Shown here: piece after piece, positions 7,731 through 17,348 of the stretch | Numbering within the stretch: position 1 is the stretch's first letter | Layout: each line of letters starts with the position of its first letter | Source of the DNA: Basidiobolus meristosporus CBS 931.73 | Lineage: Eukaryota > Fungi > Basidiobolomycota | Assembly: GCA_002104905.1 (NCBI GenBank) | Contig: MCFE01000505.1 | Span: 1 to 64,000, forward strand | DNA length: 64,000 nucleotides | Direction: 5' to 3' | Translations under genes and position numbers: made by a program | The notes under the pieces: generated by a model | Database searches by the model: none | What the model saw: only the letters and a program-made list of their open reading frames with translations | Told to the model about the DNA's origin: nothing

Positions 7731-8882
7731 ATGAAATCTTTCAACATCAATGCTATCTGCTTGCTGGCTCTTGGTGCTATTGCCATAACTACCGTTGAAG
7801 CTAGTCCTTTGGGATCTAAAGCTGTTGCTGGTGCTGAAAATGTTGCAAGGGAGGTTAACAATATTGTGCTTAATAACAACAACGAGGACTGGGAGAAATG
7901 TGACGAGCCCAAGCCTACTGACGACTGTGACGATGATGACGACCGTGATGATGATTGCGATGATGGCGATGATCATGGTAAATGTAAAGTTACTACTACT
8001 GTCAAGAAATGCGAGGCAACTTCTACCACCCCAGGAGAAAGTGGGGTTAGCTCCAGTGCTACAGGGGAGCCTACTTCGGGAGAGACACTTTCTGAACAGC
8101 CTACCTCTGAAGAGTCTTCATCTGCGGAACCTTCTTCAGGAGAGACACCTTCTGAGCAGCCTACCTCTGAAGAGTCTTCATCCGCGGAGCCTACTTCCGA
8201 GGAGCCCACATCTGAAGCTTCAACTTCTGAGGAGGCGACGTCTGAAGAGCCCACATCTGGAGCTTCAACTTCTGAGGAGGCGACGTCTGAAGAGCCCACA
8301 TCTGGAGCTTCAACTTCTGAGGAGGCGACGTCTGAAGAGCCCACATCTGGAGCTTCAACTTCTGAGGAGGCGACGTCTGAAGAGCCTACATCCGAAGAAG
8401 CAACCTCGGAACAACCCACTTCTGGAGAACCTACCTCGGAACAACCCACTTCTGAAGAGCCTACCTCAGAGCAACCTACCTCTGAAGAACCTTCCTCGGA
8501 GCAACCCACTTCTGAACAACCTACTTCTGAAGCCCCTTCCTCGGAGCAACCCACCTCTGAACAACCTACTTCTGAAGCCCCTTCCTCGGAGCAACCCACC
8601 TCTGAACAACCTACTTCTGAAGCCCCTTCCTCGGAGCAACCCACCTCTGAACAACCTACCTCAGAGCAACCTACTTCGGAACAATCAGCCTCCGAAACAA
8701 CACCAGCCGAATCGTCACCTACCACCCCTACTACTTCTCCAACTCTATTTGTTGCTCAACCAGTTGAAGATACAAAAGCCAAGGCTGATCATGTCAATAA
8801 GGTTAATGCCGGAGTATCGACTCACGCAAATTTAGCTATTGCAGCGGTTCTAGCTTTACCTGTAGCCCGTATGTTGGTATAG
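7731..8882 (+). CDS. Secreted, probably GPI-anchored Ser/Thr/Glu/Pro-rich mucin-like cell-surface protein
   Basis: 383-aa single ORF with a signal peptide, a short Cys/Asp-rich head, SEEPT/SEQPT repeats and a hydrophobic C-terminus (LAIAAVLALPVARMLV). Confidence 0.85.
   Translation: MKSFNINAICLLALGAIAITTVEASPLGSKAVAGAENVAREVNNIVLNNNNEDWEKCDEPKPTDDCDDDDDRDDDCDDGDDHGKCKVTTTVKKCEATSTTPGESGVSSSATGEPTSGETLSEQPTSEESSSAEPSSGETPSEQPTSEESSSAEPTSEEPTSEASTSEEATSEEPTSGASTSEEATSEEPTSGASTSEEATSEEPTSGASTSEEATSEEPTSEEATSEQPTSGEPTSEQPTSEEPTSEQPTSEEPSSEQPTSEQPTSEAPSSEQPTSEQPTSEAPSSEQPTSEQPTSEAPSSEQPTSEQPTSEQPTSEQSASETTPAESSPTTPTTSPTLFVAQPVEDTKAKADHVNKVNAGVSTHANLAIAAVLALPVARMLV
8080..8700 (+). repeat. Coding minisatellite: 15-nt units organised into 45-nt higher-order repeats
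   Basis: Three identical 45-nt units start at 8221, 8266 and 8311 (STSEEATSEEPTSGA). A second 45-nt set (SSEQPTSEQPTSEAP) runs from about 8493. Confidence 0.9.
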
Positions 8883-9027: not shown

Positions 9028-12000
9028 CTAAGCCCCTTCCTCTTCATCTTCTAACCAGATCATCTTCTGAATTTTCACTATTTCGTGATCAAGCGATTGT
9101 GTGTATCGTCTCTTGACAGTGGAAATACAGGGCGTACCCGAGGGCTTTTTGGCTGCCCTCGTAGGGGTGGACTTCTTCGATCCAATCGATACCAACAATG
9201 GATCCCAGTTAACTCGTTTTCGCTTGCAATCTTTGGTCCTCACACCATTGTTGGGATGCGCGGGCGCTTCTTCGATGATCTCAGTAATCTCCCGTCTTTG
9301 CTCCAACCTATCGATGAGCTTTTTGGTCGGACTAGGCGGTCTGGGAACTCCCATGCGGATGGGAACCAGCTGGAGAGTAGCTAGGTGATACCCAGAGTTG
9401 AACTGAGTAAGGTTCTTAGTTACGGCACGTACGTATGAGGCATTGACCTGGTTGAGGGGACGATCAAACGAAAAAGGTGGCTTGCGCTTCAAGGGATTTT
9501 CATTTGAAGCCTCGATTGTAATGACTTCGGAAAAGGGATCAGTTGGCTCGGCCTCACTCTCAGGCTCAGGCTCCGGTTCAGGAGTCACCTTGCGTCGACG
9601 TTTGCTGGTGCTTTTGGGAGTTACCACCTTGCTTGTTTCGGTCGGCTGAGCTACCTCAGACTGTACTTTCGTCTTGGAGCGAGTAGAACAACGAAGAGAA
9701 CGTCGAACATTTAGCGACTGATCAGGTGTAATACAATCTATCGGTTCGACAGGGGTGTCGGTTATTGAGTCTTCCGAAGGTAGTTCTTGTGGATGCTCTA
9801 GTAAATCTTGATCTGTATCCTTCTCCGGTGAGGATTTGGCCGATCTCAAGATTCGACGAGGGCCAGATTTGATTCCAACCTTCCTATCTAGTGACTTGCG
9901 TCTTCCAGCAGACATTCTCCTCTGATGTAAGGTATCCTGTAAATTCAACATGCTGTTTCGCTTGCGTGGGATGGAAAGTCTCCTGTTCCCTGACTCAGAA
10001 ATCTCTTTGTGACCATCCAACGTTGGTGCCTTTGGTGTCACCAGCAGATGGGCGTGAGTTACTTGTTCGCTAGTGGTCCCTATTTCAGTTTTGGTAGGGC
10101 CTTGGGAGCCTTCTCCTCTAGTTATTTCGCTATGATGGAAACTAGACTCCTGAGCCTTGGCTTCCTCAGCTGATTCCGAGTCACTCTTTTTGAAAGAAGA
10201 ATTGGTACTAATCTCATCATGATCGTGGATCTGGGGACTGCTTGGACAGGCAACCGTGCTATTGGTGCAACTCTCAATCTTCGGGCTATCTAGGGCGTTC
10301 GTTGCCAGACTATCTGGGCAATCTTCTTGGGAGTTCACCCGAGTCTCACTCTCGTGAATTATCTCTAATGTAACTACTTCCATGGCCATGTCGTCAGTAG
10401 GTTTGTCTTCATCCATTAAATCTGGTAGATTGATATCTTGAAGACTTTGACTCTTATCATGCAACTTCTCTTCCTCTTGTCGATTGTGATCAATTTGAGC
10501 ATTCACTGGATCTTCAAGAGTAACAACAGCATTTTGACCATGGGTGACTCCTGGGCAGTCAATCGGGTCACTGGAAACACTCATATCCATCACAAAGCCA
10601 TGGTGGTTTTGGATGTCTTCCCCCTGCGGATCATATTGATCTGGGCAGCTAGTCGAAATTTCAAGATCAAGAGCGTCTCCTGGAGAGTTGATCTGTTCTC
10701 CGAGGGTGCCCGGTTCACCCTTATTGTCATTAACCTCCTGTGAGTCCGCCTGTTCTTCAACAAACTCTGGAATTTGTTGATGGGAATTAAATTGCTCATC
10801 CGTATTTGTGCGATCGACAATCTCCATATAGCTATGGGCATCATCTTGAGAGCCCTGGTGACCTTCGAAGTTATTTGCATTACTAACATCTACTTGATGA
10901 TCTTCACGTTCTCCTTGTAGAGAGAGGACTTCGTCTTCAGGAGCATCTGAGTGAGCGGCAACGTCGGGATCAACTCGTGGATTGATTTGTTCGTCTGATA
11001 TCTCGATGCCCTCTTGGGCTTCATCTCCTTGAGTGCCTGCGGAAGCGGCATCACACTCAAGCTCTTGGATAGCACCCTGCGAAGAGTCAACCCACTCCGC
11101 AATCGTATTGGGGCAAAGGGTAGCATTCTCATCGATCTTACCGCGTCCTTGTAATTCCAGTGCGTTTATACAGGCAACAGTATCCTCACAAGCTTCATTA
11201 CCGTGAGAACAATTAACTTGCTCTTCAACGGTGTCTATGCATATGGTGGTGTTCTCGCTATCTTCATTGACTTTGTCCTGCGAAGAATCGGCTTGCTCTT
11301 CAGCAGTATCCGTACCAATGGCAGTATTCTCGCATTCTTCATTAACTTTGCCCTGTGAGGAATCGACTTGCTCTTCAACCATATCGGTGTCAATGGCAGT
11401 ATTCTCGCAAACTTCATTGACCTTGCCCTGTGAGGAATCGACTTGTTCCTTCAGCAACGTTTACATAATTAGCAGCCTTCTCCCGACCGACACTGTCCTG
11501 AAGAGAATCGATTTGTTCAGCAGTATCTGGGCCATTGTCAGCATCCTGGCAACTCTCATTGATGTATAGAGAATCGGCTCGTTCGGTATTGTCTACGCAA
11601 TTGGTAGCACTCTCACGGTCTTCATTATCCTGGGTAGAATCGAGATGTTCTTCAACCGCGTCTGTGCAAGTGGTTGTATCACCGCGGTATTCATTACTGT
11701 GCGGAGAATCGACACTTTCTTCAACTGTATCTGCGCAAGTAGCATAGCTCTCACGATCTTGAAGGATTTCTTGCACAGAGTCATCTTGCTCCTCAGCAAT
11801 ATCCATACTAGCAGCGGTGTTTTGATCGCTTTGAACGCCTTCTTGAGGAACGTCGATACTAGCACCTGGTTGCTTTTCAATATCTTCCTTCGAGTTGGCA
11901 TCACCTTGAGCCATCTGAGCGTTTGTAGCAACAAACACATGGCCTTCATTATCCTGATCCTGTGTGCTTGGCATGGCTTCTGAATCCATTCGATCAATGA

Positions 12001-14034
12001 TAGACTCATCATCATCCCTGTGCCCTTCTTGAGAGGTATCACAGAGTTCTTCCATTGCTAAGTTTGGTGTCGCTAAAGCCTGATTACTACTATCCTCCTG
12101 ATTTTGAGCTTTACTGTGTTGGAGTTCCTCCCCATCAGGCTCGAGGTGTTCATTTTGAATATCCTCAGCGACTAAGGTGGCTTGAGAAGGTGGATTTGAT
12201 TCTACCAGAGATTGATCAATATCTATAGCTGCGTCTTCGGTAGTAGATACATTTGCATTTACAGGCTCACAGGAATTTTCAAGATCGCTTGACGGACAGG
12301 TTATTAGTTCGGAATTTGGCAGACTAGGTTGCTCGCTAATTTCCTCATTCGCCATATTAGCTTCAGCGCGATCATCTTCGACTCCCGCATGGGTATTGCC
12401 ACTGGATAACTTGGTGGTAAAGTGCACCTCACCTGGCCTTGGGATCTTCGAAAGTTGAGATATTTGCGTATTCGCTTTGAAACTAGGATCAGGCTTTTGA
12501 AGTTTGGACTCGACAGAGGGTTTGGTGCCCGATGAAGCTGTCTGCCCGTGGCCCTGGAGGGGCTTGACTGAACCAGGATTTTTTCTGCCAGAGACCGGCT
12601 TACGCAGAGTAATATTGGGAGGGGGATGTTGAAATTTCGAGGAGATTGTAGGTCTCATCTCAGGTTTATGTGCAGGAACGGCTTTTGGGGGGATAGCAGT
12701 GGCCTTTGAGCTTTGTGGAATACCACTCACTTTCGATTTTGTATCCACTACTTTGGTCTTCGTAGGATTTACACTAGCTTCTTTACGTGCAGATACACCA
12801 TTAACTAGTCGACGAGGCTGAGTATTGACAGGTTGTGATGAAGCCAATCGTTTAGAGGTGGCCTTTTGTGCTATATTAGCATCAGAGAGTGTGGATCTTG
12901 AAACAGTAGTGGAGCTCTCCGCGATTGATGTCCCTGTTCTGTTTGTGTTGTGCTTCTCTTGAGCCAGACTCGAGTCTTTATCGGATGTGACTTTTTTGCT
13001 TCTCGTAGTGGATACCAAAGGCTTGCGAAGAGTGACAGGCTGCTTTAGCTTGGCTATTCTGGGAGCTGGCACAGCTTTGTTTTGGCTGAGATCTGGTTTG
13101 ATACCAGACCTTTTATCGACGGATTTCTCTCGACTAACTGCAATCTTTTTCCGATCTTGTGATTCGCCAGAACTTGCCACTATACGTCTCTTCTGTGTTG
13201 ACGGTAGCGGATTACTGCTGCTGTCGCTGTGCTTCATAGGGGCTTTTCCTTTCCCTGCGATGCGTAAGCCGACTTTTTTGGGATCAGCTTTGGAATCTTC
13301 AGGTACATGCTGTTTATCTACTTTGAGGTGTGATGTAGATGCTTGATTACTAGATATCGTTGAAGCAGTATCCGGTAATGCGGCTATAGTGTCTGCTTCA
13401 TTTGTCACTCCCGTACTTATTGAAGGCTCTGCTTCGGATGCTTCAACCTTTCGTAGGTCTGAGTTTTCGATTTGATTGTCGTCAGTGGTTTCCATTGCCA
13501 GACCATCAGAAGAATCTGAAGGCGAAACTAGCTCAGCCTTGTCCGTGGATGTAGTATCGGATATATCCTCCTTGGCCTCTATTAGATTATGTGATGCTTC
13601 TTCGCTGCGGCGAATATTCAATATACGCCTCCACCACCTTTGGAGCACAGGGGCAACTTTCTCTATACGTTGCAAACGAGCCATAGCTGACAACTCTTCG
13701 GAGCTGATCTCATCTCCACCAAAAAAAACATCTTCTTCGTCGACCTCCATATCAGCAGTTGTCGAAGTGCTATTTAAAGAATCGTCAATGAGAGTCGGAA
13801 CTTGTGTACACAAAAACGAGGCAAGAATCTTACTGGCTATCAAGTGCAGCAATCTCCTCGGAGGAGCCTTCTTCCATTCTGTAACTAATATATATGCATT
13901 AGCTTGGCCTCGGAAAGGGCAGGGCGTTAACGTGAATATACATACCTTTCGTTTTCGTCGAGTTCGTTGTCAAGGTCGACAGCGTTTCCTCTTAGTCTTC
14001 CGGCAACTGTGTGACGCCGTTTATGGCCAATCAT
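9028..14034 (-). CDS. Large (~1650 aa) intrinsically disordered protein of unknown function, split by a 1-nt frameshift near 11449
   Basis: Proposed ATG at 14034 with two short 5' GT-AG introns. ORFs 11414-13852 and 9028-11457 share the same acidic repeat across their junction. There is an IQ-like LQRWWRR near the N-terminus and a structured-looking C-terminal motif (NSGYHLATL...RPPSP; KRVNWDPLL). Confidence 0.7.
11230..11720 (-). repeat. Degenerate coding repeats of about 69-75 nt (EEQVDSSQGKVNEECENTAIGTDTA)
   Basis: GAGGAATCGACTTG recurs at 11357 and 11432 (75-nt period), with more degenerate copies on both sides. Confidence 0.8.
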
Positions 14035-14509: not shown

Positions 14510-15504
14510 TCACGCCCAAGGCTCCAGACAATGTTTAGGGAAGACCCCTTTGACCTTTCCGCGGGTTTCGTTGATACCTTGGGCCCAACCATCGTTGTAC
14601 TCGCAAAGTATGGTCACCATATCGCCGGGAAGAACCTCTATCTCATCGCCCAAAGTAGGAGTATAAGTACTGACCACAAGGAATGGCCCACTTGAATCAG
14701 GTGCTTTTTCTGTTGGGACGTAGCCGCTTATCAAACCACTCGAATTGCTTTCCAACGTGGCGACTTCATTCATCTGAGCTTTGAGCTGGCGAGAAACAGA
14801 GCGTTTACGTACTATGAACAACCCTGCCGCCAGGAGGCCTACACAGCCCGCAGATGCTAGACCCGCAATAAGCCCCTTAGGGACGCCGTTACTATCAGTC
14901 TTGGTTTGGTTGCCTGAAACCTCAACTGCGGCAACTATCGATTCGTTGCCTTTTCCTTGCTCCAATTTCTTGGCCGCCTTTTTTCCTATTATTTCGTGGT
15001 TGTGCTCTGCGATAAATACACGAGTAATCGATCAGCTTGCCAAGATCGTTTAATCAATCGAAACTGCAAGATATCCTTACCAGCGGAAGTGTCCTTTTGG
15101 AGGCCACTACATTGAACAGTCTTATTACCAACATCACATAGGAATTTTTTACTCTTGCTATTCTCTGCATAGCACCCATGAACCTTTCCTGACGGTGTAT
15201 TCGACCAAGGGTTACAGCTCACCGAGTTTCCCTTTTTATCTATACTGGAGGCCGTGGGAACGCTATCTACCTTACAGAAGCCTCGAATTTGTTTGTCTTT
15301 TCCATGAGGCTTGGCCAATTGGCACCAAGGCCTTCCGGGGGAGTCGACTTCGATGCAGCCAAGGTACTCCCTCTGCTTGTAGTGGAAGGCAGGCGCACAT
15401 AGGTTGTATTCTACCTGTGGAAGCTTATCGAAAATTGCATTTTTTTGACCTAATGTCAAGCTTGTAAATAGCGTAGTGGCAAGTAGGGTTAAAGACAACC
15501 GCAT
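14510..15504 (-). CDS. Type I membrane protein: signal peptide, two Cys-rich FN2-like modules, TM helix, C-terminal SH3
   Basis: GT-AG intron 15080-15007 joins ORFs 14989-15504 and 14510-14965 in frame. TM: GLIAGLASAGCVGLLAAGLFIV-RKR. SH3: YTPTLGDEIEVLPGD..YNDGWAQG..GVFPKHCL. Confidence 0.85.
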
Positions 15505-16859: not shown

Positions 16860-17348
16860 ATGGTACGTCCACTTTAATCATTTTCGAGCCAGCAACCAAG
16901 GTGGAATGACGATGGATGGATGAATGGAGCATTAGATTTGGATAAACTGTTAGTTTTGGTTGTTTGGTTGCTGGTTCCACGTTTTAAAGCGGATGCGCCC
17001 AGAACTATCACTTACTTACTCCATCATTTGTAGGCCAAGAAGGACGCCCCTGCCAAGCCCAGCTCCGGAGGAAAGAAGACTAAGAAGAAGTGGTCCAAGG
17101 GAAAGGTCAAGGACAAGGCCAACAACTTGGTTGTCTTCGACCAAGCCACTTTGGACAAGTTGATGAAGGAAGCTCCTACCTACAAGCTCATCACCACCTC
17201 TGTCTTGGTTGACCGCCTTCGTATCAACGGTTCTCTTGCTCGTGTTGCTCTCAGAGAATTGGAATCCCAAGGTTTGATCCATAAGGTGTCTACCCATGGC
17301 TCCCAATTGATCTACACTCGCGCTACTGCTGTCGAAGAAACTGCTTAA
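16860..17348 (+). CDS. RPS25: 40S ribosomal protein S25 (eS25)
   Basis: ATG-only first exon (16860-16862) and intron to 17033, then [44 protein letters not shown]. Confidence 0.97.

Follow-up and report, generated by a model that had tools for sequence, protein, structure and literature searches.

Here we have analysed a 64,000-nucleotide stretch of Basidiobolus meristosporus CBS 931.73 (positions 1 to 64,000 of scaffold MCFE01000505.1, assembly GCA_002104905.1; hereafter the window) and focus on one minus-strand locus, 15504..14510, whose deposited annotation truncates the gene and hides half of it. The locus is best explained as a functional two-exon gene for a Fus1-type membrane scaffold with a head of two tandem fibronectin type II (FN2) modules, perhaps placed at sites of polarised surface remodelling or cell fusion; we assign this reading a probability of roughly 0.6. 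About the architecture itself, namely a signal peptide, an ectodomain with eight cysteines, a transmembrane (TM) helix and a C-terminal SH3 domain, we are close to certain. What is new is the pairing of an FN2 ectodomain with a Fus1-type protein, in which the SH3 domain carries the Fus1 hallmarks of Cys54 and a non-aromatic residue at position 8.

The gene runs from an ATG at 15504 to a TGA stop codon at 14512-14510, and its two open reading frames (ORFs) are joined in frame through a split GAG codon across a predicted intron at 15080..15007 that opens with GTAAGG at 15080 and closes with CAG at 15007. Exon 2 encodes, in order, a lysine-rich stalk, a hydrophobic helix of 22 residues, RKR, a linker of ~40 residues and an SH3 domain with six further residues between it and the stop codon; with a single TM helix, the N-terminus outside and the SH3 domain at the C-terminus, type I membrane topology is predicted. 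Searches, alignments and folding were all carried out exon by exon, and the ~306-aa product is the inferred sum of both exons (141 codons, one split codon and 164 codons). Two annotated relatives anchor the model, the B. meristosporus paralogue P0068 (312 aa) and P0002 of B. ranarum (308 aa). The features, with the basis of each, are as follows:

14510..15504, minus strand: whole gene, start to stop codon, from the ORFs and comparison with annotated relatives
15081..15504, minus strand: exon 1, comprising 141 codons and the opening base of the split GAG codon, collinear with residues 17-138 of P0068
15007..15080, minus strand: predicted intron, 74 nt, phase 1, GTAAGG...CAG, at the same codon position and phase in P0068 and P0002
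14510..15006, minus strand: exon 2, which completes the split codon with two bases and adds 164 codons and TGA, collinear with residues 149-312 of P0068
15448..15504, minus strand: predicted signal peptide, residues 1-19, a hydrophobic N-terminus ending ...TLG before QK; homologues are also hydrophobic at the N-terminus
15274..15399, minus strand: FN2 module 1, C36-C77, from Pfam fn2, the family profile against the PDB and the model
15109..15216, minus strand: module 2, C97-C132, an FN2 module by predicted fold only, with no detectable sequence similarity
14810..14875, minus strand: predicted TM helix of 22 residues (GLIAGL...GLFIV) with RKR after it on the cytosolic side, from the sequence, homologue hydropathy and alignment
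14519..14683, minus strand: C-terminal SH3 domain of Fus1 type (Ser8, Ala37, Cys54), from Pfam, family invariants and the Fus1 rows of PMC5823434

The scaffold annotation holds a single product here, a 171-aa protein at 14989-15504 (minus strand) that corresponds to exon 1 read through into the intron. A word search with exon 1 likewise returned nothing but this 171-aa ORF of the window itself, since relatives of full length lie beyond its length filter. P0068 is collinear with both exons, matching exon 1 at 62% and exon 2 at 68%, and P0002 is 69% identical to exon 1, with both ORFs again aligning collinearly. Each of these relatives carries only one intron, of phase 1 with GT-AG ends, and it falls at the homologous codon (78 and 66 nt, respectively). 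Furthermore, the proportion of non-synonymous differences (pN 0.17-0.26) lies far below that of synonymous ones (pS 0.66-0.81, saturated) when each exon is taken separately. Because the intron position and phase are shared, the relatives are collinear and pN is far below pS, the locus reads as one functional gene and not as two ORFs; the splice of 15080..15007 is predicted from the relatives' introns together with purifying selection on both exons. An earlier note on this DNA, made from its letters, had proposed the extent of the gene, an intron at 15007-15080 between two ORFs that are spliced together, the positions of the ectodomain cysteines with a 13-residue gap in each module, and a TM helix followed by a cytosolic SH3 domain. 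All of these hold, the cysteines from the exon 1 translation, the intron as predicted from sequence comparison, and the last two from the hydrophobic segment, RKR and the Pfam SH3 matches given below.

The ectodomain cysteines fall at residues 36, 50, 61, 77, 97, 111, 123 and 132, the first and second of each module 13 residues apart. Module 1 has the spacing C-x13-C-x10-C-x15-C with conserved F40, Y42, Y47, W60 and G75-F76, and matches Pfam fn2 (PF00040) over residues 40-73 at 22.9 bits (E 8.3e-5), where the cut-off is 22.2, borderline for a single sequence; phmmer matches it to PDC-109 at E 0.0018. A profile built from 22 family members is far more sensitive, retrieving MMP9 (2e-22), MMP2 (2e-15), PDC-109 (3e-13) and fibronectin (1.5e-12) from the PDB, followed by Endo180, factor XII and the mannose receptor, and then kringles. 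In agreement, language-model features place the ectodomain among fn2 clusters with a score of 0.90, and the four-cysteine FN2-like pattern occurs once in the six frames of the 64-kb window. Judged by these sequence matches, module 1 is a true FN2 domain, homologous to those of animals. All eight cysteines are kept in 20 of 21 homologues. In two Piptocephalis proteins, P0077 and P0107, the second and fourth cysteines of module 1 are lost together (to Gly and Met, respectively) and the first and third are kept, a joint loss that fits the FN2 pairing of C1 with C3 and C2 with C4. P0107 also has a C-terminal extension of ~220 residues that looks like gene-model read-through.

Module 2 is recognised through its predicted fold. 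Its spacing is C-x13-C-x11-C-x8-C, with a short last loop, and all four of its cysteines are invariant in 22 homologues. AlphaFold2 folded residues 20-141, with the 22-sequence alignment, into a single compact unit at a predicted local distance difference test (pLDDT) of 91.2 and a predicted template-modelling score (pTM) of 0.81. Foldseek against the PDB placed fibronectin 1-2FnII, MMP2, MMP9, Endo180 and PDC-109 on top for the whole ectodomain, all of them weak matches (E>=0.035). A VIA search of 48,161 PDB chains with the whole ectodomain returned 10 chains at Z>=2, all of them FN2; nine align to model residues 64-116, which is module 2, and the tenth, PDC-109, aligns to module 1 (model residues 15-58), with a second run in agreement (model residues 15-63 and Z 2.5-2.6 for PDC-109 over the two runs). 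Folded alone, module 2 is modelled with lower confidence (pLDDT 76.9), and VIA then returned 24 chains at Z>=2, of which the top 20 are FN2 (Z 2.9-4.1, 38-43 of 43 residues aligned, root-mean-square deviation 2.7-3.6 A) and the remaining four are kringles. The kringle is the known sister fold of FN2. Since the VIA matches are exclusively FN2 and kringle chains, an FN2 fold for module 2 is very probable on the predicted model. The suggestion of two FN2-like modules in the earlier note is therefore borne out for module 1 by Pfam and profile, and for module 2 by predicted fold and not by sequence: the ectodomain search against Pfam that it had proposed finds fn2 in module 1 and no match for module 2, and the fold search points to no other Cys-rich family.

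The likeness to the animal FN2 domains of fibronectin, MMP2/MMP9, PDC-109/BSP, ELSPBP1, the mannose-receptor family and factor XII lies in the sequence of module 1, in the predicted fold of both modules, in the four cysteines and their spacing and, for PDC-109 and fibronectin, also in having two modules in tandem. The protein of the window differs from all of these in being fungal and membrane-anchored with an SH3 domain, and its module 2 differs in a C3-C4 loop of 8 residues versus 14-15 and in lacking the W-C plus aromatic signature. A bacterial counterpart appeared in the ESM Atlas, where part of the model for a cluster of PhoD-family proteins ('alkaline phosphatase D family protein'), 98% of whose members have Pfam fn2, superposes on the whole two-module ectodomain with a template-modelling score by query of 0.75 over 105 residues and a deviation of 2.4 A. 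The likeness to these phosphatases consists in model superposition only; they are secreted enzymes with neither the TM helix nor the SH3 domain.

The link to Fus1 comes from the other half of the protein. Pfam identifies SH3_9 in exon 2 at 2.6e-9, with SH3_1 and SH3_2 also above their cut-offs, and no other part of the family is as well conserved as the SH3 domain (mean column identity 75% across phyla), with Cys54 invariant in 28 family sequences and Ser8 near-invariant. Positions 8, 10, 37 and 54 of SH3 domains are normally aromatic, and yeast Fus1 is exceptional in having Cys at 37 and 54 and in binding non-PxxP peptide ligands; in the supplementary alignment of 28 yeast SH3 domains, the combination of Gln8 and Cys37 occurs in Fus1 alone (PMC5823434). 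The FUS1 rows of the same study include sequences of Mucor, Mortierella, Lichtheimia, Batrachochytrium and Rozella (PMC5823434), and these rows share with our family the motif TYTP.L.DE...EYDDGWC. The window SH3 domain is 65% identical over 40 residues to the Mucor circinelloides FUS1 row (58.5 bits). Among the Saccharomyces cerevisiae domains, in a comparison covering four of the 28 and the first 43 residues, it aligns best with Fus1 (42% identity over 33 residues, 33.5 bits), followed by Nbp2 (23.9 bits) and Bzz1_b (21.9 bits), with no alignment to Lsb1. A search of the SH3 profile against the PDB returned generic SH3 domains only (vinexin, p47phox, sorbin), no Fus1 structure being deposited there, and language-model look-alikes of exon 2 all scored below 0.9 and serve as leads only. 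The earlier note had named Fus1 as an analogy, together with Sho1; the SH3 residues and the Mucor and yeast comparisons go further and make the TM and SH3 half Fus1-type, and we consider its homology to Fus1p probable.

Many family members, the window gene not among them, also have a conserved K-R-x-S-S-[LMI/S] motif 15-45 residues after the SH3 domain (P0021, P0022, P0031, P0038, P0080, P0081, P0084, P0087, P0091 and P0094). It resembles the non-PxxP ligands reported for the Fus1 SH3 domain, R-[ST]-[ST]-S-L, and might act as an intramolecular ligand, as a ligand in trans or as a kinase site.

To place the protein within a family, 1.84 billion representative proteins were searched with ectodomain residues 20-141. 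The search returned 66 proteins, with canonical tandem-FN2 proteins down to E 8e-21. One group among them, of about 300-380 aa with a single full-length match, has the whole architecture in common (signal peptide, eight cysteines, TM helix and SH3 domain), and the remaining matches, from animals and unnamed environmental sequences, are tandem-FN2 proteins of the canonical kind. The FN2-TM-SH3 proteins come from Basidiobolus, Entomophthora muscae, Neoconidiobolus, Conidiobolus coronatus, Syncephalis, Piptocephalis, Olpidium bornovanus and metagenomes, and in the early-diverging fungi, where the earlier note had proposed to look, the family covers Basidiobolus, Entomophthorales, Zoopagales and Olpidium. 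At least four paralogues are present in B. meristosporus (K493DRAFT-tagged proteins being those of strain CBS 931.73 in GCA_002104905.1) and three in B. ranarum. In the ectodomain tree, the window gene groups with B. ranarum K7432_001668 and K7432_003811 and B. meristosporus 341313 at a clade support of 99/100, and the other three paralogues make up a second Basidiobolus clade. In public databases these proteins stand as 'hypothetical / SH3 domain-containing'; in the literature on FN2 in fungi, on Basidiobolus and on early-diverging fungi we found nothing relevant, and no paper describing the FN2-TM-SH3 architecture, in keeping with the earlier note, which knew of no such fungal protein.

The same TM helix, with an SH3 domain 55-70% identical, recurs in Mucoromycota, in proteins of Umbelopsis, Jimgerdemannia and Paraglomus, whose ectodomain is short, Ser/Thr-rich and free of cysteines, with no FN2. 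A 517-aa protein from a Logan assembly, P0112, has a TM helix and a Fus1-type SH3 domain (...FPAVC) below another kind of Cys-rich ectodomain, ~200 residues long and without a Pfam match, which suggests that ectodomains have been swapped on one TM and SH3 chassis. Outside the family, the strongest matches to the ectodomain (P0003, P0004, P0005, P0007, P0008, P0009 and P0013) are tandem-FN2 proteins of as many as 10 repeats, in some cases joined by EGF or PAN domains, on short environmental contigs without a taxon; these may come from non-animal eukaryotes.

Fus1p of S. cerevisiae (YCL027W, pheromone-induced) belongs to the type I membrane proteins: its ectodomain is O-glycosylated, an SH3 domain lies near its C-terminus, and its cytosolic tail holds it at the mating projection's tip, and it is required for cell fusion (PMC2063912). 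The window protein is like it in its single pass with the N-terminus outside, in its C-terminal SH3 domain and in the non-canonical surface of that domain (Cys54, non-aromatic position 8 and, in most family members, Cys37); the Mucoromycota members match the Fus1p layout, from a short Ser/Thr-rich ectodomain through a TM helix to an SH3 domain at the C-terminus. Fus1p differs in that its short O-glycosylated, Ser/Thr-rich ectodomain is free of Cys modules and in its proline-rich region, whereas the window protein starts with a cleavable signal peptide and two FN2 modules and has a linker of ~40 residues and Ala37. Sho1, which likewise couples the surface to cytosolic scaffolds from the membrane and ends in an SH3 domain, is set apart by four TM helices, a canonical PxxP-binding SH3 domain and the lack of FN2.

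Several points weigh against a Fus1-type scaffold with a tandem-FN2 head. The function of the FN2-TM-SH3 protein is purely inferred, and the exon encoding its TM helix and SH3 domain (14510-15006) is unannotated in the deposited record. What supports the Fus1 link is the SH3 domain together with the general layout of the protein; most members have Cys at position 37, where the window gene and its closest paralogues have Ala, the cytosolic tail of the yeast protein is far longer at 416 aa, the 'orthologues' of PMC5823434 are one-way BLAST matches at E<1e-5, and the yeast SH3 comparison covered four of the 28 domains. A full-length family profile search, swamped at 8000 scored candidates, returned no Dikarya protein and neither supports nor refutes the link. 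As for module 2, its profile found nothing meaningful among PDB sequences, hhalign of module 1 against module 2 gave a probability of 13%, Foldseek against the PDB with module 2 alone gave no FN2 row and was weak for the whole ectodomain, and no structural Z value exceeds 4.1, low figures that are common with domains of 45 residues.

If the Fus1-type reading is right, the product would be a type I protein of the plasma membrane in which the two FN2 modules are packed as one compact eight-cysteine unit on a short stalk. The FN2 pair, standing in place of the Ser/Thr-rich stalk of Fus1, would be a structured binding unit for an extracellular ligand, and the Fus1-type SH3 domain would recruit cytosolic partners, probably through non-PxxP peptides. 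Like Fus1p, the protein may thereby act as a scaffold anchored in the membrane where wall and membrane undergo polarised remodelling. By analogy with Fus1p, it may take part in cell-cell fusion or conjugation, an assignment that we offer tentatively and at less than even odds.

A different outcome would follow if the FN2 head kept the ligands of its animal counterparts, as the earlier note had proposed: a receptor for collagen, gelatin or choline phospholipid with an SH3 output and no specific relation to Fus1. Module 1 is, after all, an FN2 domain by its sequence matches, the pocket aromatics, the Trp of W-G-[FY]-C among them, are retained in most of the family, and both Basidiobolus and the Entomophthorales live inside animals or on them. 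The choline pocket of PDC-109 has four aromatics, Tyr75, Trp93, Tyr100 and Trp106. Aligned to domain b of that protein, Y42 and W60 correspond to Tyr75 and Trp93, both kept, and the positions of Tyr100 and Trp106 are occupied by His67 and Arg74 in the window gene and its three closest relatives, so that two of the four aromatics of a full FN2 pocket are replaced in the window gene; the pocket Trp is kept in most other members. With His67 and Arg74 in the pocket, and with the family also present in mycoparasites (Syncephalis and Piptocephalis) and the plant-root parasite Olpidium, fungi that never meet collagen, binding of collagen or choline lipids is not supported for the window protein; furthermore, the SH3 domain carries the rare residues of Fus1. 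We regard such a receptor as unlikely.

Perhaps the Cys-rich head instead contacts the fungus's own wall polymers, making the protein a wall or surface-stress sensor of the Wsc/Mid2 type whose SH3 domain passes the signal to polarity or mitogen-activated protein kinase (MAPK) components. Sensors of this kind share the order of signal peptide, Cys-rich head, stalk, TM helix and short tail, Wsc and Mid2 likewise couple the cell surface to cytosolic scaffolds from the membrane, and a swappable ectodomain on the TM helix and SH3 domain, Ser/Thr-rich in Mucoromycota and otherwise Cys-rich in P0112, would suit a sensor; Fus1p itself has been compared with Mid2p as a type I protein (PMC2063912). However, the Pfam scan found no WSC or other wall-binding domain, the conservation of the SH3 domain points to Fus1, and Wsc and Mid2 possess neither SH3 nor FN2, which leaves a sensor of this type decidedly improbable. 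That the locus is not one functional gene at all, being a decaying duplicate or two unrelated ORFs, could be argued from the deposited 171-aa model and from the four or more paralogues in Basidiobolus, and is scarcely credible given two intact exons with the eight cysteines and the SH3 core conserved, canonical splice sites whose position and phase are shared with annotated relatives, and pN well below pS on both exons.

The genes around the locus have no functional link to the finding. They comprise a 1612-aa low-complexity protein with no Pfam match (9028-14034, minus strand), ribosomal protein S25 (16860-17348, plus strand) and a homologue of DNA-pol-phi/Mybbp1a from about 17730 (plus strand).

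A study of domain origins placed the origin of FN2 at the chordate node (PMC1654190), and the literature treats FN2 as an animal module; this view is altered by a conserved fungal family and, alongside it, a superposable bacterial unit. The ectodomain of Fus1, regarded as a mere glycosylated stalk, gains relatives with a real binding domain, and what Fus1-type proteins recognise outside the cell becomes testable through its FN2-bearing relatives. It is conceivable, and for now doubtful, that zygomycete-grade fungi use a Fus1 scaffold with a tandem-FN2 head to mediate partner or surface recognition in conjugation. If true, recognition in conjugation would depend on a domain regarded as invented by animals, even by chordates, and FN2 would either predate animals or have been exchanged with bacteria, in whose PhoD enzymes the two-module unit has its superposable counterpart. 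Early fungi would then have used the Fus1 chassis as a common base for exchanging ectodomains, be they Ser/Thr-rich, a pair of FN2 modules or otherwise Cys-rich.
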